Shown piece after piece: positions 39,452-58,322 of a DNA stretch of 64,000 nt (its first letter is position 1; every line of letters begins with the position of its first letter). The notes beneath the pieces are model-generated. The model worked only from the letters and a program-made list of their open reading frames with translations, did not search any database and was not told where the DNA came from. Made by a program: the position numbers and the translations under genes. Where the stretch lies: assembly GCA_025603075.1 (NCBI GenBank), contig MU626307.1, positions 1 through 64,000 of the forward strand. Direction: 5' to 3'. The DNA comes from Neoconidiobolus thromboides FSU 785 (Eukaryota; Fungi; Entomophthoromycota).

Positions 39452-41380
39452 ATGAGTACCAATAATGAAATTTGGAAAAAAGAATTAGGCGTTGAGGTAG
39501 CAGAAAGCTTGAATGGTGGGGATAAAATTATTTTACCAGCTGACGTATTAGAAGAACTTTTAGAGCTATATGATCATAACTTACCCACACCACTAACATT
39601 TAAAGTATCAACCCATGAAAACAGTTTCCTTCACTGTGGCGTTAGAGAGTTTAGTAGTCAAGATGGCACTATAATAGTACCACCTTGGATACATGAATTT
39701 TTTAATGGTAATGACACTACTATTAATAAACTAACTTTGGAGTCAGTTCAACTTCCTAAAGGAAAATGGGCAAAATTCGTTCCTCTAGAAGATGATTTTT
39801 TACTGGTTAAAGATCTTAGGGTTATGTTTGAATCTTCTTTAAGAGCCAATTTCACCGCTTTAACTCAAGGACAAATACTCCATACTCGTTATGCATCTAA
39901 GGATTATAAGTTTAGAGTCGATGAGTTGAAACCTGAAATAGCAGTTAATATAATAGATACGGATTTGGAAATTGATATTGAAACACCAATTAATTTTTTA
40001 CAAGGGACTTCGAATTCAAAAAATATAGCTAAAAAGCTAAAGATTCAAGAAGTTAAAGTAGACATCGTTAATTCATTTAAGCTAGGTAAAGGGGAATCAA
40101 TGCAGTATCAATTTTTATGGCCAAGAACAACTTCTTTTAAGGTTGTTTTAAAGGCTTTTGGTACTACTGGACCTAATGCTTTCTTAATTCCTGGTGTAAC
40201 AGAAGCTTCAATTGATAGTCATATTTGGGCTTCCTTTGGTTCACAAAATGAAAAAACAATTACTGTCAAAAAGAACGACCCTGCATATAGAGCTCCTTAT
40301 CACTACAGTTTAACTGTAACAAGCAATAGTGAGTTAACTTTTAACTTAATAATAGAGGAATATAATGAGCCAGATGCTATTCAAGGACCAGCTCCCATCA
40401 AAGAAGATGAGGTTTTATGTACAACGTGTAACAGGATAATACCTAAATCTAGTTTTACTTTACATACCAATTTCTGTGCACGTAACAACAAAGTCTGTGC
40501 CATTTGTAATAAAGTGTTCAAATCAAATGAAATAAATCAACATTGGCATTGTGAGTTATGTTTAATGGATGGAAACTCAGGAGATAATGATATACATTAT
40601 GGGTTTTTTCATACAATTAATCACTGTGAGTGTGGCTCTAAAGTAGAAGGAAAACATGGGTTAGCAAGGCATAAAATTTTAGACTGTCCTAATAGGCTGA
40701 TAGAGTGTCGCTTTTGTCATGATCTAGTACCATATAACAAAAAATCATCTGATCCGGCGGATTGGGAGTTTGATTTAACAGAGCATGAGTCTTATTGTGG
40801 AAACAGAACAATCACATGTTCCAAATGTAATAGACATGTCTCATTAAAAAAGGTAGGATTACATGCCAAATATCACGAGTTTGTGAAGCAAAGTCAACCA
40901 CTGCCGTTTCAAAAATGTTCAAATAGTAATTGTATCAAAGAGCAGACCGGGGATACTAATGAAATGAGGTTGTGCCAGGCGTGCTTTTATCCTATTTGGT
41001 CACCAAATTATGATCCTGAGAATAAAGCGCTTAGGAAAAGGGTAGCTTTACGCTATCATAATCAGTTGGTTAAAGGGTGTCAAAATCAATGGTGTAAAAA
41101 TCAATATTGCGCAACAGCTACAAAGGAGCCATTAAATCCTAATGTGGCAGCAGCTAAGTTAATACCTCTATTAAAAATTCCTTTGTTAAAAGGCCAAGAA
41201 TGTCACTTTTGTGTGGATCAAAGTACTACGTTTAAAATGGAACTTGTAAATAAACTCAAACACGAAAGTAACGGATTGTATCCAGTTGAATGGTATATTA
41301 GATCTTTAACTATGAACGAAGCTGATTTCAAAGAGTGCTTAAAATGGCTTCGAGTTAATGCTCCAACCACAAGGAGTTAA
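39452..41380 (+). CDS. Ufd1-like double-psi-barrel protein with TRAF-type zinc fingers and an AZUL-like zinc domain (642 aa)
   Basis: GDKIILP..L..L, LHCGVREFSS..G.IIVPPW, LPKGKWAKFVP, LRANFTALTQG, AVNIIDTDLEIDI (UFD1 family); repeated C-x2-C..H..C; YHNQLVKGCQNQWCKNQYCA. Confidence 0.85.
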   Translation: MSTNNEIWKKELGVEVAESLNGGDKIILPADVLEELLELYDHNLPTPLTFKVSTHENSFLHCGVREFSSQDGTIIVPPWIHEFFNGNDTTINKLTLESVQLPKGKWAKFVPLEDDFLLVKDLRVMFESSLRANFTALTQGQILHTRYASKDYKFRVDELKPEIAVNIIDTDLEIDIETPINFLQGTSNSKNIAKKLKIQEVKVDIVNSFKLGKGESMQYQFLWPRTTSFKVVLKAFGTTGPNAFLIPGVTEASIDSHIWASFGSQNEKTITVKKNDPAYRAPYHYSLTVTSNSELTFNLIIEEYNEPDAIQGPAPIKEDEVLCTTCNRIIPKSSFTLHTNFCARNNKVCAICNKVFKSNEINQHWHCELCLMDGNSGDNDIHYGFFHTINHCECGSKVEGKHGLARHKILDCPNRLIECRFCHDLVPYNKKSSDPADWEFDLTEHESYCGNRTITCSKCNRHVSLKKVGLHAKYHEFVKQSQPLPFQKCSNSNCIKEQTGDTNEMRLCQACFYPIWSPNYDPENKALRKRVALRYHNQLVKGCQNQWCKNQYCATATKEPLNPNVAAAKLIPLLKIPLLKGQECHFCVDQSTTFKMELVNKLKHESNGLYPVEWYIRSLTMNEADFKECLKWLRVNAPTTRS

Positions 41381-44146: not shown

Positions 44147-45072
44147 ATGGGTATAAAAATTGAGCAAAAAGAAGTTGAAATAAAGGCCTCTAATGATTTA
44201 TTTGAAAACTTGTTTGGTATGATTAATTAAAATTGTGTTTGGTATCAATATATTAACCTTTTTTATTTAATAATATAGAAGTAGCAGTTCATACGTAATT
44301 ACATTTACCATTAATTTTTATAAAATCTTAACTGCGTAGCATTTTATATTTAAGAGGAGCTTATGCAAAAGAAGATTTTGAGATCCATGAGTTTGATACT
44401 ATTGAATTTATGAAGCTTAAGCCCTTGACCTATTTAGGATTTATTAATGAATTTATTGAAACTTCAAGAAGTAAATTACATTAGTCTATTATATTATTAC
44501 TAACTTACGAAAACAGATCGCTTTTTATGTAAAAAAGGATGCTCTTTCTCATTGATAATTAAAAGTGCTAAAAGCGGGAATGTCCTTGATACCTGGGAAA
44601 TAAATTTTAAGCAAGAAAATGAGTAAACAGAAATTAGTAATGATGCTTTTATATTCATTTTATTATAGGGAAGAAATTGGACTGACTAAACCTTCAAGTA
44701 AAACCAAATTCAGTGAGTTATATTATCTAAATACAATACAAAGTATACTACATAAAACTTCCGGATTAGAAGAAATTAAAGAAGAAAGTAAGTAACTTTT
44801 ATAGAAAAAAAATATCATATTAAGCTGTTTTAGTTGTATTTGATTTAGACTTCGATACCATGTATTCTGAGGAAGAGACTGATTCTAAGGACTGGTTTAA
44901 TAACAGTACGAATTTGTCCGATCTTCAGAAAATGTTTCAAGCTGCAGCTACTCTTCGTAAGAGATATATGACTAATGTCGGTGAAGCAGAATGTAGCCCA
45001 CGTAAGAAAATCGAGCTTGGCCTTTCTGCTTCCCTTTCAAAACTTGAAACAGCCCATTACTTTCATTATTAA
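44147..45072 (+). CDS. Divergent HORMA-domain protein 1 (Rev7/Mad2-like, 6 exons)
   Basis: Exons 44147-44216, 44279-44294, 44340-44470, 44517-44622, 44669-44787, 44834-45072 splice in frame: ENLFEVAVHTILYLRGAY, SLIIKSAKSGNVLDTWEINF, LNTIQSILHKT, IVFDLDF..KDW, then a unique tail with SPRKK. Confidence 0.8.
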
Positions 45073-47379
45073 TTTTAATTAAGGACTGGGGCTGTTATGA
45101 GTAGTTTTCTTTTATCTTTCTACCTTCCCGTTAAGTAAAATAGTCATGTTTCTTTTAATCTTCGTTAAGAGATATGACGAAATAAATTACACTAAATTAG
45201 TTAAAATCAATTTTATAAAGCAAAATAGATTGATTGTCTTTCTATTATATTGTAAAAGAACATAGAATTTCTTTACTTTTAGAATGATAGTATCAAATTA
45301 CATTCTTCCGTATAGTGGAACTAGATGTTTATAAACTAAGTTAATTATGGATTTACAACTTAAGCAACAATCTAAATTTCAATTGATGTAACAACCTTAT
45401 CATATCATCCTAATGCATTTATTGTAAATTTTTATACGTTTCCAGCAATTTGATCTACCAGATTATACTTTAAAATATGATATATTAATCTATTTCATTA
45501 CATTATACTACAATATAACAGTAATTTAGCGTAGCCTCCATTCAATTTTTAATAAAATCAGCTAATTTTATTATAATCACCAAGATACATATTTGATCTA
45601 ATTGGCGCGAAAGTATTAAAAGATTACTAAATAGATAATCACATTCAAGCTTGTTACCATCATTTAACCAAAATTCCTTAATTCTTACGACTTGTTATAG
45701 GGTAAAAGCTGGAATATAAATATGACCTTAGACAAAATATTTTATATAAAATATTTATACTCATGTCAGATAAAGTCCCTAAAATAGCTTTTTTGAACGC
45801 TTTTTCTTTATAACTGTTCTTATAATATTTACAGAACTGAGTATATAAACGATTATTGTATGTTCAGGATGTCTTTTTTGTGTCAAATTATATAAAGATT
45901 GTCTTAGTATATCTATGCTTTAGATAAAGTTATACTTAGTCATATTTATTTAATCATTTACATTAAAGCGATAAAATCAAAGTATTTAATGAGTTTGTAC
46001 TATTTTTATTTGAAGTTGCGCTTAAAGTACTATTATAAATTTCTAGCTTATTAAATTATCAATTATTTTTATTAAATCTTATTCTTATTTTTTATCTTCA
46101 ACTCAAAGTTAAAAATAATAAATATCATTAATAGTAAATTAGTCTAAAGAAACGATATTATCGTTTTGTATTAAACTCAAATTTTTAACTTATTATCACA
46201 AATTGAATATCTATAATGAACAATGTTTTGTTATTTGTTAGTACATATAAGTAATATACTAGTAAATTTAACTTAGGAGGGTAGTATGTTTTGATTAATT
46301 TACAACCTTGAGGACTATTTTTTTAATTTGATTAAAATATAAGACAGTGCGTTATAATATTTGAAGGCAAGAGCCATACATAATCAGTATTTAAGCGATT
46401 AAATTTGATGATGGTATTTCTACTTTATTTTAGTAGCTTACTTTAATGGCTTTTTTGTTTTTATAATAATGCATTAAAATTACATTTGACTTTTTTCCCA
46501 ATAAATCCTTTTTAGTTCATTAGCATTATTCGCTCTTTAACTTATTCCAACCTCCTAATAATAGTATAAATATAGCTTTTAATTTATTCACAAATGAAAT
46601 ATTTTAATTACGTTGACTAATTTCAGCTGTAAAGCTATACAGTGGACCATTTAAATGAGAAAAATTTAAAGTTAGGTCAAATTTAAAAGCATGATTAATA
46701 ACAGACTTTAAAAAGCTATGATCAATGGACAGAATTCTTTTAAAAAGATATTCTCATTATTCATTGAAATGTTATATTTTGGTTATACTAAATAAAATTT
46801 ATCATGCACATAATAGTTTACTTTTTAAAGCAAAAATTGAGTTTAAGAGATCATTTTAAACAAAGGATATTATTGGCTAATAAGTTTTCAGAAACGAAAA
46901 GCTCAATTAAACAGTCAAATTGTAGATTAAAACTAATAGTGGCTATAAAAAAGATAAAACTGTTGAAAATGCGACCAAAAATCCAATGTGTAAATGAAAA
47001 TTCGATTCATATTGCTTTTGAAATGAATTCAAATAATAAATGTAATTTATTAGGTGTAGTGTATGATGAACTTTAGACTACCATTGTTTTTAAAGGAATT
47101 AAATAGGAAACGTAATCTGGTTTTTATCCCATAATATTAGGACAGCGTGAATGCAGAATTGCCAAGTAGCACTTTGATTGGTCTAACTACTGTCATTTTT
47201 AAAACTGCACAAAAATGGACTGACAAGCAACAAATCCAATCAAGGAAATCCATACCATGGCAAATAGTCCAATAAAATGGTCGGATAGAATAATTAAGGA
47301 ATGAAACAGAGCAGACCAAGCAAGCAATAAAAATAAAAAATTTAAAAAAACATCGTTTGTCTTTTTCAAATAAAATAAA

Positions 47380-47928
47380 ATGGCTAGTGTTGACCCTAAA
47401 GTTCTTAAAGCTGTCCTCAAGGAAGGTGGTAAACGTGCAGTAGAAATCGTTGGTGTTGCTGAAACCGGTGGTCTCGAATTTTTCTGTACCAAACTTGACG
47501 AGCCAAATGGTAGCGTTGAGCTCCTCCTTGAAGCCCTTAAAGCTATGAATAAACCAATTGACCCTAATGAAGAAGAATCCAAAGGTGGTTCCCAAGACAT
47601 TGGTAAAATGATCTTCTCTGTCAGCAACGACCAACTCGCCGTTATCGCTTACGTTCCAGCTGCCAAACAAGATAAAATCACTGCCAAGACTTGGTTAGAA
47701 CACGTTCTTACTAAATATGAAGGTAAAGTTCTCGAAGCTAATGATGAAGTTGCTTCCGGTATCATCCTCGCTAACCCAGAAAAGAACGTTTTCTCATTAA
47801 AGGTTCGTGACGAAGCTATCCCATACTCTATCGCTTATCTCCGTTCCCTTGGTCTTTTCCCAGAACAAGCTGATTCTTCTGATGATGAAGCTGCTTTCGG
47901 TGATGACTTCGATTTCGATAACTGTTAA
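47380..47928 (+). CDS. Small conserved hypothetical protein, likely highly expressed; acidic C-terminus
   Basis: No introns; strong C-ending codon use (CTC, ATC, TTC, GAC) unlike neighbours; motifs KEGGKRAVEI.G, EESKGG..DIGKMIFS. Confidence 0.8.
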   Translation: MASVDPKVLKAVLKEGGKRAVEIVGVAETGGLEFFCTKLDEPNGSVELLLEALKAMNKPIDPNEEESKGGSQDIGKMIFSVSNDQLAVIAYVPAAKQDKITAKTWLEHVLTKYEGKVLEANDEVASGIILANPEKNVFSLKVRDEAIPYSIAYLRSLGLFPEQADSSDDEAAFGDDFDFDNC

Positions 47929-48458
47929 AGAATAAATTTGTAGCTATTTATAATTAGTTATTTATAAAAGAATATATGGTATAAGGAACTTTAATATTTT
48001 TATTAATATCAGATAATTTTTATTGATTGCTATATATTTAATAATGTAATATCGCATGTACCAACAGCCACTATAATAAAGCCGAAATTTGTAGCTTGTT
48101 GTTAATCAAAATTAGTAAATAAACTAGATTGCTGTAAAAAATACACTATTAGATACAACTTTATTCTGACATTTATTTAAAATGAGCTTGAACATACCTT
48201 CTAGTCCTACTTTGATATGTAAAATTACAAAAATGCTTGGTGGCAATTTTCAATAGTTAACTATTGTTGTATTATCTCTTGCTTAAGTTATTAGATACAA
48301 TAAAGCTGAAATTTTAATTTGTAGTATTTTTTATTATATAAAATAAAACTATAGCTAATTTGAAACTTAATTTCATTAGCTCTTTAAAAACCAAGGAATT
48401 GAAAGCAAAAATTTTATTTTTTATAATTCTTTTTTTTATAACACTTAGTTTAATAAAA

Positions 48459-49522
48459 ATGGCTGAACATTTAGCATCAATTTATGGTACTGAGAAAGAT
48501 AAGTAAGTTTTTAATTTTAATACTCAACGTAATTATCAAAAAGGAGGTTATCAATAATTTAGAGTTTTTTGAATTTGAACTAGTTAACTTTTCAATGTAC
48601 TCAAACAGTTTGTTCTTATTTTAGCTTAGGATATAAGCAGTGCCCTTGGCTTGGTTCAATATTTAAACTTTAAAAAAATAGTCAAGCTCTATTTGAGCAA
48701 GCATTTTAAACCAAATTTTTTATTTAATATAGGGTCAATTGTTCCTTTTACTTTAAAATTGGAGCTTGTAGGCACGGTGAGCGTTGCTCTAGGAAACATG
48801 TTAAACCCACCTTTTCCCAAACCATTTTGGTCCCAAATATTTACCAAAACCCAAACTTCAATTTATCGGTTCCAATGGACGAAGTTGCTCATCAACAACA
48901 TTTTGATGACTTTTATGAGGACTTTTTTATTGAGTTGGCTAAATATGGCGAAGTCGAAGAGATGAACGTTTGTGACAATGTTGGGGACCATCTTGTAGGA
49001 AATATATATGCTCGCTTCCGCTTCGAAGAAGATGCCGGGAAAGCGGTTGCTGAGTTAAACAACCGATTCTATGCTGGTAAGTACAATATGATTGAATTTT
49101 TAGCTAAGCTAATTATTTTTAGGGAGACCATTGTACGCTGAGTTATCTCCAGTGACTGATTTTAGAGAAGGTAATTTTGAATTTATCTTTCTGATAATTG
49201 ATTAAAGTAATATTTAGCTTGTTGTCGACAATATGAAAATGGAGAATGTACTCGAGGAGGATTTTGTAATTTCATGCATTTAAAGATGCCATCACGAGAA
49301 TTAAGAAAGATACTCCACCAATCTCAGAGGAAGTCAATAGAGATAAAGCGACAAGAACGTCATTTAACAAGAGAGTTGGAAAGAAAATCCCATTATCGTG
49401 GCCGCTCTAGATCAAAGGAAAGGAGTGCTAGAGAAGTTGGGAGATCTAGAGAAAAAGCACGCTCTAGAGAACATGGTGAATCAAGACACCGCCATTCCCC
49501 AAGAGCTAATGGACATGCTTAA
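48459..49522 (+). CDS. U2AF1: Splicing factor U2AF small subunit (4 exons)
   Basis: Exons 48459-48502, 48733-49076, 49123-49170, 49218-49522: [69 protein letters not shown]-rich tail. Confidence 0.96.
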
Positions 49523-50051
49523 CTTGTCTGTCTGATGCTTTTATAATATAGCTGTTTTATTAATATTAAAATTAGGATCTGATTATGTGAATTTGGATTT
49601 ATGTTTAAAATATTCAACGTTTTTTTAGTTTATAAATAAGACGATATGATGGAAAAATAAATCGAGTAGAAAAACGAAAATTAAATTATAAAATATATAA
49701 CGGCAGTGTTGTAACTGATACTAGTTATTCTGATAGTTGTATTTAACTATTGATATTAAATGTCACTAACTATAGAATAGATTATTCATATTAAGTAATA
49801 GTATCGCAGTAACAAATCATGCTCTAACATTCTACTTCTACACCTTTACCATGTAATAAAAGTCAACAAAGTTTAAATAATAAAGGTTTACTCTATAAGT
49901 CAACATGATTAATTCTTTTAAAACAATAATAAACTAAACACTGCTTTCGTTAATAATTCAAAATGTAATAATAAAACTTGATAACTGTAAAGTGGTTTAT
50001 TTGTATTAAATGGTTTTGTTAATGCTTTAGTATAAAAAATTAGTAATCACT

Positions 50052-53000
50052 CTAGAATGAATTGCGACGTCTAAATCTAGGGCGGTAATCATTTGGAGTA
50101 CTTGCGCTTGTAGAAATGGTAGATGAAACTTTTTCCATGTTATGGGCAGAAACATTTGAATTGGTCCAAGTAGATATCAATCCTTCATCATGCCAAGTTT
50201 GAACACATTTTTGACCATGAGCATAACCTACTGCTTCAATATTGGTAAATGATCCAAACTCTAAAGTTCCATACTTTTGGACTGGGAGACGAATATAAAG
50301 ACATCCCGGTATCTTTTTGGCTGCTTCGATTTGAGAAACACTCGAGATATAAGCAAGTCTGGATTGAATATCAGCAAGAGAAAGAATTTTAGGACGATAA
50401 AAGGGATTCAATTTGGAAAGAACGACATACCATCCAGATAATGAATCTCCATAATTAGTGAAATTATCTTCATTATCTTCTCCAGCGACATCCAGAGCAA
50501 ATATAGTTTCTACACCCATTGAATGCATGACTTCGACTGGAAGGTAGTCTAAATATCCGCCATCTAACAGTAAATTATTACCGTCACATAAAGGAGGCAA
50601 AAATCCAGAAAGCGACATAGAAGCTCTAACGTATCTCCACAAATATCCGGATTGATGAACTTCAAGTCGAGAATGAGTAATATTGGTAGTGACACAATAA
50701 TATGGTAGCCATAAATCCTCAATTCTAATATCTTTAAATGTTTTCCAAATACCTCGATTGAACTCATGCCCTGAAAACCAAGAAATAATAGGATAAGTAA
50801 GGTCCGTAACTTTACGCCATAAGCTTGCCATTCTATTGGAAAACACTCTAGCTGGTGCAAACATAGCAACAGTATCTGAATCTCTAGCATACAATCCCCC
50901 TACATAAGCTCCGATACTACATCCTCCAACGATATCAATTGGAATCCCTGCTTCTTCAAGGGCCCTTATAAAGCCCAAATGAGCAATTCCTCTTGCTCCT
51001 CCTCCACCAAGGACTAAACCAATAGATCTTCCACACAGACGACGTGCTAAACGAGAAAAATCTGATCTGATCCCAGTGTAAGATGAGGGTTGATGAATAG
51101 ATTTCTTTGATAAACCTACACCAGCAACATCAGCGTAATACTGGTGGAGTTGGTCTTTAAGTTCGTTTAAGGTAGATAATATAGGTGGTACATTCTTCAT
51201 AATAACTTGTCGCTTGAGAGGGAACTGCACATGATGATGTGCATGAATCCAAAGCCTAGATTTCAACCAATTTTGAGTTGAACCAGAAGGCACCATATGA
51301 TCTGGATGAAGAAGGACAAGCTCCTTTCTAGCTGTTGTTTTAGAGCTGATTAGAAGCCTTTCGAATTCTCCAATAGAAGGATCTTCCGATCCTATGCCAA
51401 TAAGTAAAATACAATCAGCTTGCCGTATACATTGACGGGTCCATGGCGAGTTTACTGCCCCATCAGCAGTTAATAAAACAATTCTATGACGCTCTTCTTG
51501 TTCTATTAACCAATTTTTGAGCTTAAGTTTACCCATCTTAGTAAACGCATGCCTTCCAAGTGCGGAATGAACAGAAGCACTATTGATAACTTGAACTGAC
51601 TCTCCAATACTTTGGAACGAGTCCCTCAATCTAGCAGAAAATTCTTGGATAGGTACATTCCCTTTAACTGGGACTATTGCTACAGTTTTTAGATTTGTAT
51701 TATTTTTACCAAAACTGGTTTTTTCTATTGATGATGCTGATTTTACTCTCAAACTAGCTTGTTGTTCCATTGTTCTGCGTGCAATCATCCTTGAGATTTG
51801 AATAGTTACTTCAGGATTTGCAAGCGAAATAGCGTCGAATAAGCTCTTTGGCATCCTTGCAAGCTCAGAGTCGCGAATAGCATGCAAAGTAAAAGGGAGT
51901 GGGGAGTTAGTTAACATTTCTAATTCACCAACCGAATCACCTAAACCATATTCAGCCAATATATTTATTCCTTGATCTTCCGATTCAGCAATAGTACGCA
52001 ACCTCCCATTTAAAACAATATAGATTGCATCGCATATATCATCTTGCTTACACAAAACTTTACCTGCACTAGCTTGAACCCATTCAAGCGCAAAATCAAT
52101 TTGTAAAACTAAAGGCGGAAGACGATGAATAAGCCTTTTGGCTAAAGTTAACAGAATAGCAGGGTGTTTTTCAGTTAAGCGATCAAGGTATTTCCTTGGC
52201 AAACAAGCCACTAAGGTATTCCCTGCTGCTGTCATGTTAATAAAAGAAGGAGTTCCTGTAATAGAGCCCAAATATCCTGCTACACATCCTTCACGTATTT
52301 TACTTGTTGGTCCTCCTTTGCTTTTGGTTTTATAACTTGAGAATTTCTTTGATTTATGCCTAGAGGTTTCCTTGTGTTTGTGCGATAAATGTTCTTTCCC
52401 GAAATTTGGAAGACTCACCGAACTCTTCCGACTAACTAAAGCTGGTTTCTCATCCTCGTTAGTGATATTAATTGAGCCATGAAGCACTAAATAAATACCG
52501 TCTAATCTTTCACCTTTGCTAATCATAGTAGCTCCAGATTTAAGATAATAAAGTTCTACGTGATCTTCATAATTATCTTTTAAAGAATTAGGGGAATAAG
52601 TTCCTGATGGAGATATAGTTGATGACGCTACATCTTCTTCGGAGTAGTCTGAATCTTCTTCAATTTCATCCGAGTCACGAGAGTACGGCGAACTTTGTGC
52701 TCTAGATAAATCCCCTGCAGAAGAAGATATTAAATGAATGTTTGGAGTCATTCCAATTGAATCCAGAATTAACTGATAAGACTGCTTACGAAGGCTACTA
52801 TAAATTTCCTCTTCCTCTTCATTACTTAAAGCATTTTCCGATATATGAATCACAGAATTCGAATTTCTTTCATTGGGAATAATAGTTTCTGCAGCTATTG
52901 TGGCTTTCTTCTTGCTTGAATCAATGTCTTTTGAGCTATTTGATCTAGAAAGTGAAAGTTTTGAATTTATTCCTTTTGCCACATCAAGCATTGCTTCAGT

Positions 53001-54191
53001 GTGTTTCGGATCAAAAGTTCTACTCTGTACATTGTAGTTTGCAAGATCAGATACCTTCTTTTCTATCTCAAGTAATTCCTTAGACATACCAAGGTAATTA
53101 TTTAAAGTGAGGAAGGTAACTCTCTGGAATCTAGTAAGAATTACTTGAACAATATGAGCGGAAGAACTGGGAAATTTTTTAATCAGCCTTTGAAAGGCTT
53201 CTGCTGGTATAACTGCAAGAGTGGAATCACAAGTAGCTCTAGCTGTAACGTGTGGATGTAAAGGCTCTTCCTTTAAACCAGGTGATTCTACAAAATGATC
53301 ATGTTTAACTAAAGCCAGCCCTTTATTATCAATATTTAAGTATGCATCACTGTGATTATCTGAACTATCTATTTCATGTACTTTTCCTATAGTTTCTAAA
53401 ATCTTCTGATAATTGAAATCACTGTTCGCAGCTCTTTTAAGTTCAACATTCTCAGTAAACAAGGATAATAAAGTAAATAAACTAGAAAGTGTTCCACCAG
53501 CTTTAACTTCAGTGAGAATGTTTTCCGAAGGCTTATCATTTGTTTGGTCAGCAAAATAACCACTTACATTTCTTTTAGTAGAAACCTGAATTTAAGTTAG
53601 TAAATTTAAACTAGTCTATAAAACTAAAATAAGGCCTACCTGAACACAACCATCCACTACAATATAAAATGATTTCTCTTTATCAAAGCCATCAAAGATG
53701 ATATCGCCTTTAACTACTCTTTTTGTATTTAAATATCTCGATAACTCATTAAATACCGGTTCTTCTAGATAGCCGAATATTTTTATTGAAGACAAGATTG
53801 ACTTTAAAAATTCATTTGGGTAATGACCTAAGTTTGATTCATCATCTGAATCGTCTAAATGACTAGCAATTGGCTGAAGATCAAAGGCATCAGATTGTTT
53901 AGGCGGAGCTTCAGTTTCAGGCAATCTTGAATAATTGGTATGATAGCGATATCTGACATAAATGTAGAACAATATTATAGCTAAGATGAATAAAAATAAC
54001 AAAGTTTTATAATTGAATGAAATGGTGATGGTTTTTGATAATATTAAAAAGATCGAAGTTGGTATCCTATAAGTTATTAGTAGCAATAGCTCGTAAATAA
54101 CGGAATAAATCATCTGTAATACTGAGCGATTTTGGAATGGGATTGAACATGTATCTGAGGTTACTTCACATGTACTTTCAAGTAAATCCAT
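50052..54191 (-). CDS. NTE1: Lysophospholipase Nte1 (cNMP-binding domains plus patatin domain)
   Basis: GLVLGGGGARGIAH, GGCSIG nucleophile motif, LLLDGGY, WRYVRASMSLSGFLPP; N-terminal TM helix; one intron near 53587-53639. Confidence 0.93.
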
Positions 54192-54656
54192 TTTGGGTTT
54201 TAAAAATTTTAAAAGTAAATTTTCGCCTTTCACCTTTTGTCTTTTAAACTCAGTCGATAATTTAAGAATTTTAATGAGGTAAAGTGCTCATCATTTTATT
54301 ACTTTCATTTAAAAATTTGAAAATCAAAGAATAAAAATCATGTTGATGTAATTCATTCTATATAGTTTGACGAATAAGGTATTCGTATTAAAACACGACT
54401 AAAGATTAATTCTTTGTATAAAAAAGCATATAATTATTATGATAAAACTATATAATCTACATCAAAAATGATATATCATCCATTTAAACCTCTATTTAGT
54501 TTAATACTTTTATAAAAACTGTTTTCATTTAACCTAACCTTAGATATTGGAAATTTAATTTGAAAATTAGATCCATGAAATTCTAAAGTTATTTGTTATG
54601 ATTAAGATTAGTGGCATTAAACTTAATAACTTTTTAAGGGCCATGTAAATACTATA

Positions 54657-54718
54657 TGGGGATGTGTTTTTTTGTTTAAGAATTTTACTACAATCTTAAA
54701 TACAAAAATACATCCCCA
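54657..54718. mobile_element. Short symmetric MITE derivative, copy 15
   Basis: TATA|tggggatgtgtttttttgtttaagaat...atcttaaatacaaaaatacatcccca|TATA; lacks the central core, and both ends are the same end type. Confidence 0.8.
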
Positions 54719-54954
54719 TATATCAAGTTTTTTAAAATTCAAACTATTAGTCCCTAATATAATAGACGCCATTTCAATAATTTCGCTTTTTATTACAAAA
54801 TTGTATTTGTTAAATCAGTAATTAAAATATGGGCAGGCCTTTCATTTTTTACTTTTTAATCATCTGTCCCTTTGCTATTTAGCAATGTACCAAATTTTGC
54901 ACAATTCACTTTTTTAAATCATTGAACTTCAATTTAATAACAACTCCTTAAAAA

Positions 54955-55775
54955 ATGGAAGAAAGCTATACCTTTCCAAGTGATGACAAAGCAAAACTAT
55001 TCTCATTTTTAAGTAATATAAAATCAATAATAATGATAATAATATAAAATGTTAATATTATATAGATTGTGGGATAAACTCGTAATCAAATATAACTTCA
55101 TTAAGATATAAATTAAAAAGTAGAGTTTTAGTATATAGTAAAATATTAGATGCCTCCGATTATGACAAGTTGAAAGGAGGAAATCTTTCCATTCCACAAA
55201 ACTTTGGGAATGAACATGAGGAATATGTTCAAAGTAGCATACAAAAAGCATTAGGTAAGACTTTAAGCTATGATAAATAAGGCTGTTTAATTTGTAAGAA
55301 TTATTTAGTGAAAAAAAGTTACATCAGATTGACTTAAATATTATGTCCAAAAGAAACCATGACGTTATTGGGAAATGGTGTTTTAATATCAGCTATAAAA
55401 ATGGATTAAATGGGTAAAATGTGACTGCATATATATCTCAATATTAACCATTTTAGGCAAAATCATGCAGATGATGAAAACAAGTTTGAAAACGACCTTA
55501 AAATGTTAGAAAGAAGGATAAGTAGCTCGATTAGTATGCTCTATAATTGCGGCGAAAGTATAGCATTTTAAGTATTAACATTTCTGATTGATTAATATAT
55601 TTTAGAATATTATGAAATAGTTCTTATCGTTCATCAAGACCTAAAAATTGAAAAAGAATGGAAAGAAACGTATCCAGGACTCATCAATACAAGTTTAAAT
55701 GAGCTTTTGTTACGCGAGTTGAATGAAGAGTCTTTTAATTTGAAATCTAAAGCTCAGTTTAATAAAAAGTTTTAG
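54955..55775 (+). CDS. Divergent HORMA-domain protein 2 (Mad2-like, 6 exons; absent from ORF track)
   Basis: Exons 54955-55012, 55066-55081, 55124-55254, 55299-55413, 55457-55557, 55606-55775 splice in frame: FSFLNCGINSVLVY, KKLHQIDLNIMSKRNHDVIGKWCFNI, RRISSSISML, YYEIVLIVHQDLKIEKEWKETYPGLINTSLNELLLRELNEESFNLKSKAQF. Confidence 0.8.
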
Positions 55776-56174
55776 CAATAATAAGCTGCAAATGAAACAT
55801 GTTAAGTGTTAGGAAGCTTAGAAGCAAAAATTAAATTACTCATGGTTTCAGATTAAGTTTATTTACTAAGTTGGGGCGGTTTTCAGTGGTTCATTAGAGA
55901 TGCTATTTAAAGGTTAGATAAAAAATTTGATACTTTTAAGCATTAGAGCATGACAGAAGGAAGTGGGTAAACAAATTAGATAAATAGTACTTAAGGCAAT
56001 AACTTAAGTAGCACAATGAAATATCAATATCCGAAAAAAAAGGTTAAAAATGATTTTTTAAAAGTACTAATAGAGCTTTATTTAAATCTAAAAATATTAT
56101 TTTTAAATTTTTAGAAAATGCTATAAAAAATAATTAAACTGAATTACAAAAAGTTAAAGCAGAGGAAGCAAATA

Positions 56175-58322
56175 TTAAATAAATGTTGATTGAGGATTGG
56201 GTTGGGTTACATCATCAGATAAATAACCATTGGAATCTGATATGTCTGCGTTTGAAATGTTTTGGTAAATGACAGGCGAGCTTAAAGGGTCGGAGGTAGG
56301 TAAATTAGCTTGAGCTTCAATGTTATACACTTCATCGCAAGCATAATCTTTATAGCTTAAAAAATATAAATATAAATAAATAGTAAAGATTTATAAGATT
56401 ACTAATTACTAAAGTTCTTTTTCTGAAATAATAGGCAAATTTTCCTTAACCCACGATTCTTCATCATTTGATTCCAAGCTATCCCTATATGCAGGCTTGG
56501 TTTTAGATCCAGAAATACGCTTCCTATCAATATAGATTCTACCTCCTCTTCCAAACCTTCTACGACAAGCAATGGAACTAACATCTGATTCCTTTATCAA
56601 GAAATGAGGTGAAATTGTATAATAGGTTTCTGCTTTGGGGATAATGGGTGTTTGATATGGTGCCTTAAAATAAAATATTAAAGAAAAAGAAAAGACTAAA
56701 AAACTACATACATCAGTGATATCAGTATACCCTTCTAAGTCCTTCTTTTTAAGTCTCTCCAGTCTACGTATTTTTTTGCGAGGAATAAGCTCGGAATCGA
56801 ATATATCATCGTTCAAATTGATACTATGAGAGCTTGCCCTAAAAATATTAATGAAAAGTAAAAACAATAACAATATAAACTTACTTATGCTATAGTTATA
56901 ATGATTATAAAAAATTAAAATATTAGTAAAGCTTAAACATCCAACCATTAATATTACCTCATGTTTCTTTACATTATCTCTAATTGCTGGATCATCATAT
57001 TTAATAGCAACTCTTTTCTTACATATGCTCATACGCTTTTTTAATACCTCTTCTTGCATATGTATCGCTTCTTCTCTTTTTTCTTCTCTAGCGATACTAC
57101 TATCAACAAGAGATAATAGTTTGTTCAAGTTATAACGCAAATGGTTCAATTTGTTAATATAGAAGGTATCAGTCGCACGCGTACGCCTCTGAAGTTTAAT
57201 TTCCCTTCTTCTAAAACAAAGATATGGATCATTTTCTGCTTTGATACTACGATCCAGCTAAATTAAATTAATTTATTAGTTTCTTAGATCTTAAACACAA
57301 CTCACCCTCAAACGGGGCATGATGGTGTCACTATTATTCATTTTCTTGCGGCGGTTTATCCAATGTTGTAAAATTGCATTGAACTGCTTTTCAATAGATT
57401 TACTTCTAGAAAAGGTTGTCTTTAATGTAACAAGTATATCATCAGGAATTTTAACGTTTTCTTCTTTCTATAGAAATGGTTTATGATTTAAAACAAAAAC
57501 ATTTTATAAACAACTTACTGGATCGATTCTACCATCTGCCACTGCATCTTCTAATAGTTTTAAAATTTCTTCAAATCTAGACTCGTTTATTTTTTTCACC
57601 GTTTGGTCTGAATATGTTTTGATGAAATTGTAATCTTCTTCATCCATGCAATAACTGATCCCAATAGAAGTATCATAATACTCTGTATACTTTATGTACT
57701 CTTGAGGCTGTTGAAAATCAGGTTGATAAAATACCGAGTAATCATCTACCAATTTCGATGCATCTGGTGTTGGTATATAATTTGAAGCAACATGACCACC
57801 TGTATAAGCAGCTTGTGCCGACTTTATTGCAGCTTGTAAATGATGTTCCTAAAATAATTCAATTAGACACGTAGACAAAAACTCGAATTTGATAGAAATT
57901 GTTAAAAAATAAATAGTTAAATTTGATTGGCTAAAGCATAAAATTATGTAAAGCTGAAGTCACTTAGAATTAGTCAATTTCAGCCAATTAACTTGCGACA
58001 AACATAGAGAACAAATGGCTGGAATTATTATTATGGAATATAGTGATAATATGTGATAAAATACACAAAACTCATATAAAATCCATTAAAGCGTTGACAA
58101 AAAGGTAACAAAGTGGTATAAATAATGGATAAAAAAGAATAAAAAGGATAAAAAAATAAACGATATTACCTCTTCTTCTTCTTTTTCAACTCCTGTCTCA
58201 ATTTGAACTGCACTTCGTTGAGAAGTGAGCGCTTCAATATCTGGAGCATCTTCAGTCTTGATTAAAGGTAGGGCTTTTTTGATATCTACCTTTCGGCTTC
58301 TAAAGTTCATTCTTGTGCTCAT
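56175..58322 (-). CDS. EPL1: Enhancer of polycomb-like protein (NuA4 subunit, multi-exon)
   Basis: FRSRKVDIKKAL, IETGVEKEEEEEHHLQAAI, YIPTPDA, YCMDEED, DPYLCFRRREIK, CRRRFGRGGRIYIDR. Confidence 0.9.

Follow-up and report, generated by a model that had tools for sequence, protein, structure and literature searches.

Mad2 (MAD2L1, KOG3285), of the spindle assembly checkpoint, and Rev7 (MAD2L2, KOG3186), a subunit of DNA polymerase zeta (Pol zeta) and of shieldin, are the described HORMA proteins that come closest to the two proteins considered here. Typical Mad2 proteins share 45-70% identity between distant eukaryotes and have near-invariant motifs. Mad2 changes between an open and a closed state and binds the Mad2-interacting motif found in Mad1 and Cdc20, while the binding partners of Rev7 in Pol zeta are Rev3 and Rev1. 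The window analysed in this study, i.e. the whole stretch of 64,000 nucleotides (nt) at positions 1 to 64,000 of the forward strand of contig MU626307.1 (assembly GCA_025603075.1) of the entomophthoromycote fungus Neoconidiobolus thromboides FSU 785, contains two HORMA genes, g1 and g2, that depart strongly from this pattern. We consider it likely (a probability of about 0.7) that both descend from MAD2, instead of being one MAD2 and one REV7, and that the ancient exon layout was kept while the sequence was largely lost. Under this explanation the two MAD2 descendants would have retained five ancestral introns and lost about two thirds to three quarters of the near-invariant residues.

The window is AT-rich eukaryotic DNA (~21-38% G+C per 2-kb window) with numerous introns of 42-62 nt. 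Exon models built from it place g1 at 44147-45072 and g2 at 54955-55775, 9.9 kb apart on the plus strand, with six exons each and products of 226 and 196 amino acids respectively. Their parts are given below, where ORF stands for open reading frame and columns are those of the Mad2 profile hidden Markov model (HMM) described later.

44147..44216, plus strand: g1 exon 1, 70 nt, begins at the ATG and ends in phase 1 (ORF-keeping GT..AG model)
44279..44294, plus strand: g1 exon 2, 16-nt micro-exon encoding ..VAVH.., from column 25 (phase 1) to column 30 (phase 2)
44340..44470, plus strand: g1 exon 3, 131 nt, end of helix A to helix B, gapless and colinear with Mad2 columns 30-74
44517..44622, plus strand: g1 exon 4, 106 nt, beta4-beta5 with the conserved Trp, a weak match to the Mad2 HMM; its 3' intron lies at column 109, phase 2
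44669..44787, plus strand: g1 exon 5, 119 nt, helix C region; its 3' intron lies at column 151, phase 1
44834..45072, plus strand: g1 exon 6, 239 nt with the TAA stop counted, beta6 followed by a tail not alignable to the Mad2 safety belt
54955..55012, plus strand: g2 exon 1, 58 nt, begins at the ATG; the first piece of a contig from source X6 ends at 55012
55066..55081, plus strand: g2 exon 2, 16-nt micro-exon encoding ..CGIN..; joint 55081>55124 seen in X3
55124..55254, plus strand: g2 exon 3, 131 nt, gapless against Mad2 columns 30-74; joint to 55299 seen in X1, X2 and X3
55299..55413, plus strand: g2 exon 4, 115 nt, beta4-beta5 with Trp; matches the Pfam HORMA family by itself (E = 0.013)
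55457..55557, plus strand: g2 exon 5, 101 nt, helix C, retaining the Arg of the conserved RQIT motif of Mad2
55606..55775, plus strand: g2 exon 6, 170 nt with the TAG stop counted, encodes beta6, the safety belt and the C-terminal strands, aligned to Mad2 HMM columns 153-202
55776..55797, plus strand: g2 3' untranslated region, up to the poly(A) addition site (X3 contig)

Intron phases (1,2,1,2,1) are common to both genes and every intron is GT..AG, those of g1 measuring 62, 45, 46, 46 and 46 nt. For the last three exons of g2, 12 ORF-keeping combinations are possible and the RNA data chose the one given here. These models bear out the twin six-exon architecture that an earlier sequence-only reading of this DNA had described, with a 16-nt second exon and a 131-nt third exon shared by proteins of low identity (~20%; BLASTP E = 0.36). 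The same reading held that gene finders would easily miss both genes, but both are annotated in GenBank with exactly these exon models. The translations of g1 and g2 are identical to KAI9295932.1 (226 amino acids) and KAI9295936.1 (196 amino acids) respectively, each a 'hypothetical protein' of N. thromboides FSU 785 and each the sole member of its 90% cluster. A profile of the g1 and g2 exon-3 pieces, searched against 1.84 billion representative proteins, returned exactly these two entries, and word-index searches with the g2 protein and with the g1+g2 alignment returned the queries themselves and no relatives; as a short profile or exact words were used, the absence of orthologues is not demonstrable from these searches. 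No third HORMA gene was found within the window by tblastn or with the Mad2 HMM. As additions to a known family the two genes are new and very diverged, although both are already annotated as hypothetical proteins.

Full-length g2 matched the Pfam HORMA family (PF02301) with 25.4 bits (E = 1.2e-5), above the curated cut-off of 24 bits, while full-length g1 scored just below it (23.7 bits, E = 3.7e-5). Despite this sub-cut-off score we include g1 in the family because of its matches to Mad2 chains in PDB and its 42.8 bits on the Mad2 HMM. PF02301 was the only Pfam family matched by either full-length protein at E ≤ 10, with no match to p31comet (PF06581), ATG101 (PF07855) or the bacterial HORMA families (PF18138 and PF18173), and in PADLOC g2 had a weak HORMA match (E = 0.0045, 14.9 bits), whereas g1 had no match. 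When the exons were searched one by one, the sole weak Pfam HORMA match was that of g2 exon 4, nothing meaningful was found in g1 exon 6 and no relevant match was obtained in PDB, the pieces being too short for a better yield.

The HORMA fold consists of three helices packed on a beta sheet and a safety belt at the C-terminus, and predicted structures agree with it in part. The ESM Atlas model of g2 (predicted template-modelling score, pTM, 0.77) aligned to a fungal Mad2 cluster with a template-modelling score (TM) of 0.84 over residues 9-196, and that of g1 (pTM 0.60) to MAD2A and Atg101 clusters with TM of only 0.52-0.58. For both proteins, the ten best family-bearing ESM Atlas feature matches belonged to the same family or clan as the top one, HORMA. 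In the low-confidence AlphaFold models, helices A and B are followed by two strands, helix C and a further strand, an order that agrees with HORMA as far as beta6, and among the 50 matches listed by Foldseek for the weak g2 model all but one were Mad2, Rev7 or bacterial HORMA (TM ≤ 0.36). We conclude that both genes are real and encode highly diverged HORMA proteins of the Mad2/Rev7 type, mutually homologous in gene structure, as had been proposed.

Which of the two families they belong to was addressed with phmmer against PDB, where g1 and g2 each matched Mad2 chains only. The best match in both cases was Schizosaccharomyces pombe Mad2 (4aez_B; E = 9.5e-7 for g1 and 4.3e-8 for g2), g1 matched 11 distinct Mad2 sequences at ~1e-6, human MAD2A was found at 1e-6 to 5e-4 and no Rev7 chain appeared at E ≤ 10 for either protein alone. 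A joint profile of g1 and g2 reached 61 bits against S. pombe Mad2 and 45-49 bits against human MAD2A, but stayed at 21-23 bits against Rev7 (22.6 bits for yeast and ~21 bits for human). Since this joint score on Mad2 is far above that of either protein alone, each gene appears to retain a different part of the Mad2 ancestor, and to judge by their sequences g1 and g2 seem to have eroded heavily and independently from a Mad2-like ancestor, rather than being a Mad2 and a Rev7. As a calibration, the intronless ORF L013, a normal Mad2, scored 199 bits against S. pombe Mad2, 148 bits against human MAD2A and 33-36 bits against human REV7.

These results bear on an alternative that we regard as unlikely, in which g2 is the single, unusually diverged MAD2 of the genome, g1 is REV7 (the Pol zeta subunit) and the introns predate the MAD2/REV7 split in early eukaryotes. 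The sequence-only reading was correct in reporting an EVAVHxILY motif in g1 (EVAVHTILY), a stretch present in human REV7 as well; g1 also has a Pro near the Rev7 'HPxL..YI' site, and Rev7 is in general poorly conserved. Its description of g1 as Rev7-like nevertheless disagrees with the PDB matches and the joint-profile scores given above. Moreover, g1 carries a Mad2-type Trp, has the Mad2 spacing in beta5 and aligns with Mad2 without a gap over columns 8-107, whereas the alignment of canonical Mad2 with REV7 contains length differences (residues 16-102 vs 19-104).

The descent of both genes from MAD2 is further supported by gene structure. A Mad2 HMM was built from 28 intronless ORFs on metagenome contigs, and 120 loci were obtained by scanning metagenome contigs with the back-translated Mad2 motif NS[IV]L[YF]QRG[IV]YP. 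Both genes are gapless against this HMM from column 25 to beyond column 100, g2 scoring 55.9 bits over columns 21-202, a span that takes in the safety belt, and g1 42.8 bits over columns 8-164. The introns of g1 fall at columns (with phases) 25/1, 30/2, 74/1, 109/2 and 151/1, and those of g2 at 25/1, 30/2, 74/1, 112/2 and 150/1. Introns 1-3 therefore occupy identical Mad2 columns, while introns 4 and 5 are offset between the two genes by three codons and one codon respectively, in a variable loop and beside an alignment gap. For introns 4 and 5 the MAD2 gene architecture has positions ~110-116/2 and 150-151/1, and g1 and g2 both conform to it.

In the metagenome loci, HMM hits were chained, splice sites refined and junctions mapped to HMM columns, giving 69 spliced MAD2 loci (43 clusters at 85% identity). 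Intron 25/1 was present in 18/69, 74/1 in 28/69, 113-116/2 in 11/69 and 151/1 in 12/69; the 4/69 obtained for 30/2 is a lower bound, as the search motif selects against this intron. All counts leave out 11 loci with a vertebrate-type Mad2 signature (L007, L019, L038, L055, L059, L061, L073, L090, L096, L110 and L117). The MAD2 genes on these contigs are of vertebrate type and have long introns, and the contigs, drawn from several samples with no relation to each other, are probably host or human contamination. Seven named MAD2 genes, obtained free of the motif bias and mapped exactly to their proteins, are organized as follows.

Klebsormidium nitens: exons of 73, 16, 131, 121, 104, 122 and 51 nt, phases 1,2,1,2,1,0, with the 16-nt micro-exon at L121:676-691
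Branchiostoma: exons of 76, 147, 121, 104 and 164 nt, where 147 = 16+131
Trebouxia: exons of 89, 131, 121, 104, 122 and 45 nt
Thecamonas: exons of 89, 131 and 383 nt
Myrmecia: exons beginning 92, 131 and 121 nt
Heterostelium: introns at 25/1, 116/2 and 192/0
Guillardia: only 74/1 and 192/0 shared

A 131-nt exon is thus found in the MAD2 genes of Klebsormidium, Trebouxia, Thecamonas and Myrmecia, and the 16-nt micro-exon between 25/1 and 30/2 is common to the canonical MAD2 of a charophyte alga, g1 and g2. The five positions recur widely, in animals and green algae, in Thecamonas, in a slime mould and in numerous eukaryotes sampled by metagenomics. They probably date back to the last eukaryotic common ancestor, and the micro-exon is probably as old as the eukaryotes. 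Because all five positions and phases are widespread in MAD2 genes, the introns of g1 and g2 are, without exception, old MAD2 introns and the '16 + 131' pair is the ancestral layout. Inherited from the parent MAD2, the shared introns carry no information on a recent event. The sequence-only reading had inferred a lineage-specific expansion, but the shared introns are no evidence of a recent one, given their frequency in the canonical MAD2 of distant eukaryotes and the 16+131 pair of Klebsormidium; the same reading had allowed that the introns might be ancestral, and in this it was right. For a REV7 origin of g1, the retention of all five MAD2 introns, micro-exon included, would be unusual. An intron study lists the HORMA cluster (KOG3186, KOG3285 and KOG4652), without a per-family result (PMC9120149).

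In sequence, the two genes lie far outside the canonical range. Complete canonical Mad2 proteins (n = 71) score 214-338 bits on the Mad2 HMM (median 286), against 42.8 for g1 and 55.9 for g2. Among the 39 near-invariant Mad2 columns (≥ 90% conserved), g1 keeps 13 and g2 keeps 10, with only four in common, and the top identity of either protein to any Mad2 is 24%, so that neither shows the sequence conservation typical of Mad2. What g2 does keep agrees with the Mad2 hallmarks reported for it earlier, i.e. GINS, two of the three conserved tryptophans (columns 100 and 169) and a C-terminus that aligns to the safety belt up to column 202; Trp75 is gone from g1 and g2 alike. The QRGxYP motif is absent from g2 and the RQIT motif from g1, while g2 retains the Arg of RQIT in helix C, the dimer-interface arginine of Mad2. 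The g1 alignment stops at column 164, and no belt-like exon was found near this gene with the Mad2 HMM. After beta6, a helix is predicted in g1 with low confidence (residues 173-195), which does not align with the safety belt.

Such extreme divergence, with most of the invariant residues of Mad2 gone and the tree branches saturated (see below), could also be expected if one or both genes were decaying copies, pseudogenes in the making whose open frames were merely kept. We consider this very improbable. Both genes are complete ORFs over six exons with intact GT..AG sites and the predicted secondary structure keeps the HORMA order. In addition, g2 is transcribed: 33-49% of the sequence words of 54800-55900 occur in each of five runs, a share to be expected if the transcript is spliced, and RNA-like contigs from three studies, placed on 54700-56000, show it spliced and polyadenylated (the sources are denoted X1, X2, X3 and X6). 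Junction 55081>55124 was observed in X3, 55254>55299 in X1, X2 and X3, 55413>55457 in X1, X2 and X6, and 55557>55606 in X1, X2 and X3. Splicing of intron 1 is supported by one low-depth X6 contig, in which 54941-55012 and 55124-55186 are separated by exactly 16 unplaced letters; an X1 contig opens with the 16 letters of exon 2 fused to exon 3. A loose run of 19 A follows ~55797 in an X3 contig. The RNA support for junctions that had been suggested as a check is therefore available for all five g2 junctions and for the poly(A) site.

The X2 and X3 contigs also reveal a second allele or strain of g2 (55358-55775), in which 11 codons differ, 7 of them silently and 4 by replacement. In exon 6 it is ~6% different (nine codons changed in X3, six silent), and at the exon 4/5 joint three letters are replaced. 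The excess of silent changes favours purifying selection and argues against decay. Among the X3 contigs, one retains intron 1 (55013-55065) with introns 2 and 3 spliced out and another retains intron 4 (55414-55456), which would suit a decaying gene. Reading through intron 1 meets a stop codon, and these contigs are partly processed or non-productive g2 transcripts. A 2291-letter X1 contig continues beyond the g2 poly(A) site toward a minus-strand ORF (56409-57149), and may represent read-through or overlapping convergent transcripts.

With both genes taken as MAD2 descendants, the question of what else the lineage possesses can be approached through published ortholog sets (van Hooff et al., 2017; PMC5579357). 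Conidiobolus coronatus is not in the Mad2, Mad1, Mps1, TRIP13, p31comet and HORMAD files, but is present in those of MadBub, Bub3 and Cdc20. Entries in Mad2.fa exist for Coemansia, for Mortierella and for Phycomyces. The gaps in C. coronatus reflect either loss of the Mad1-Mad2-Mps1 arm or copies that are too diverged, or mis-modelled around micro-exons. They make the absence of a canonical MAD2 from the lineage plausible and, given the descent of both genes from MAD2, the chances lie slightly in favour of a lineage in which no canonical copy is left and MAD2 has turned into g1 and g2. The absence of a C. coronatus Mad2 would also fit the alternative in which g2 is the diverged MAD2 and g1 is REV7.

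A different outcome, possible although we hold it to be less than probable, is that the genome has a canonical MAD2 and a canonical REV7 at other loci, in which case g1 and g2 would be additional Mad2-derived paralogues, specific to the lineage, evolving fast and endowed with new partners. The distance of both genes from the canonical range, in bits (43 and 56 vs 214-338) and in near-invariant columns, suits this, as do the retention of canonical Mad2 by most fungi, including the three genera just named, and the lack of relatives in the exon-3 profile and the two word searches. Those searches, however, cannot show that orthologues are absent, and the C. coronatus gaps suggest that a canonical copy may be missing from the group.

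Several observations weigh against the descent of both genes from MAD2, or against their being all that remains of it. The distance of g1 and g2 to Mad2 (30-36 bits) is about that of Rev7 to Mad2 (33-36 bits), so that g1 lies no further from Mad2 than Rev7 usually does. The nearest ESM Atlas feature cluster of g1 is a fungal 'DNA polymerase zeta processivity subunit', i.e. Rev7 (0.94), and the EVAVH motif is itself Rev7-like. The AlphaFold models have predicted local distance difference test (pLDDT) values of 33.5 and 45.6, from an alignment of two sequences only. The HORMA phylogeny that had been called for was run as a maximum-likelihood tree of 62 rows, among them the vertebrate-type locus L059, but it was saturated, with both genes on branches of length 10, neither placed and the placement meaningless; it was not used. 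The g1 junctions rest on the ORF, splice signals and the identical GenBank model. C. coronatus belongs to another genus and its proteome dates from 2017, the absence may reflect a missed gene model, and canonical MAD2 and REV7 may lie elsewhere in the N. thromboides genome; a homology search with the Mad2 profile returned no fungal sequence among the best 120 of 5854 matches, a result that is uninformative on canonical MAD2 in this species. Finally, g1 could stem from REV7 with anciently shared introns, although we think this improbable.

On the scenario that we slightly favour, the Mad1-Mad2-Mps1 arm of the checkpoint would have been lost or remodelled in this lineage, and MAD2, freed from those partners, would have duplicated, both copies then drifting fast. 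With its full HORMA domain, safety belt and C-terminal strands, g2 could still close around a short motif of a partner as Mad2 does; g1, a HORMA core to beta6 followed by a tail not alignable to the belt, would more likely act as a non-closing partner or regulator, like p31comet or Atg101. More tentatively, Conidiobolus/Neoconidiobolus may have lost the arm altogether and reused the orphan, duplicated MAD2 as a fast-evolving pair of HORMA adaptors, in which g2 would close its belt on new partners and g1 would be its new-tailed, non-closing mate. If so, very diverged survivors would lie hidden behind the published reports of an absent Mad2 in such fungi.

Two neighbouring genes were characterized with Pfam. 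The 642-amino-acid ORF at 39452-41380 (plus strand) combines Ufd1 N-terminal domains with XAF1/TRAFD1-type zinc fingers, a UBZ-like finger and AZUL, an unusual Ufd1 architecture. At 50052-53462 (minus strand), between g1 and g2, lies a large exon of a lipase of the neuropathy-target-esterase (NTE) type, with cNMP-binding, NTE P-loop-like and patatin domains, an ordinary gene.

The structure of MAD2 genes has been conserved between a charophyte alga and this fungus, which explains the striking exon layout that g1 and g2 have in common. Gene structure can thus place very diverged proteins in their parent family where sequence alone barely can. If g1 and g2 are the sole MAD2 descendants of a lineage reported to be without Mad1 and Mad2, they would offer a natural experiment on a shape-switching checkpoint protein after the loss of its partners, and some published Mad2 absences would have to be re-read. 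Should a canonical MAD2 be present elsewhere in the genome, they are simply two new diverged paralogues.

Compared with known HORMA systems, the closest likeness is to Mad2 itself, which is the best and sole PDB sequence match of each protein alone. The domain order and the colinearity of the core are those of Mad2, g2 aligning through the safety belt to the C-terminus, and the genes share with MAD2 five intron positions and phases as well as the 16-nt and 131-nt exons of Klebsormidium. They differ from it in their scores on the Mad2 HMM (43-56 bits vs 214-338), in the few near-invariant columns kept (13/39 and 10/39), in the presence of two copies 10 kb apart in N. thromboides and in the g1 tail, which is not alignable to the belt. 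Rev7 is likewise a small single-domain HORMA protein; a Rev7 cluster is the nearest language-model neighbour of g1, and human REV7 has the EVAVHxILY stretch in common with g1. It differs in that neither protein alone has a Rev7 match in PDB and in that the joint profile reaches 21-23 bits on Rev7 vs 45-61 bits on Mad2.

p31comet and Atg101, which pair with Mad2 and Atg13 respectively, may be an analogy for g1, whose HORMA core has no recognizable Mad2-type belt and which lies beside a belt-bearing relative, and the Atlas model of g1 reaches TM 0.58 to the Atg101 cluster; in contrast to these proteins, neither g1 nor g2 matches PF06581 or PF07855 at E ≤ 10. The Mad2-like protein of Trypanosoma brucei, according to the work cited in PMC11633173, is located near the basal body, and the Cdc20 of this organism is described there as lacking the Mad2-binding motif. 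On this account it too would be a descendant of Mad2, apparently reused, in a lineage that lacks the canonical spindle checkpoint (PMC11633173), although it is a single copy and the loss of the checkpoint arm in N. thromboides is only inferred from C. coronatus. The reuse of this protein provides a precedent for reading g1 and g2 as derived survivors of MAD2.

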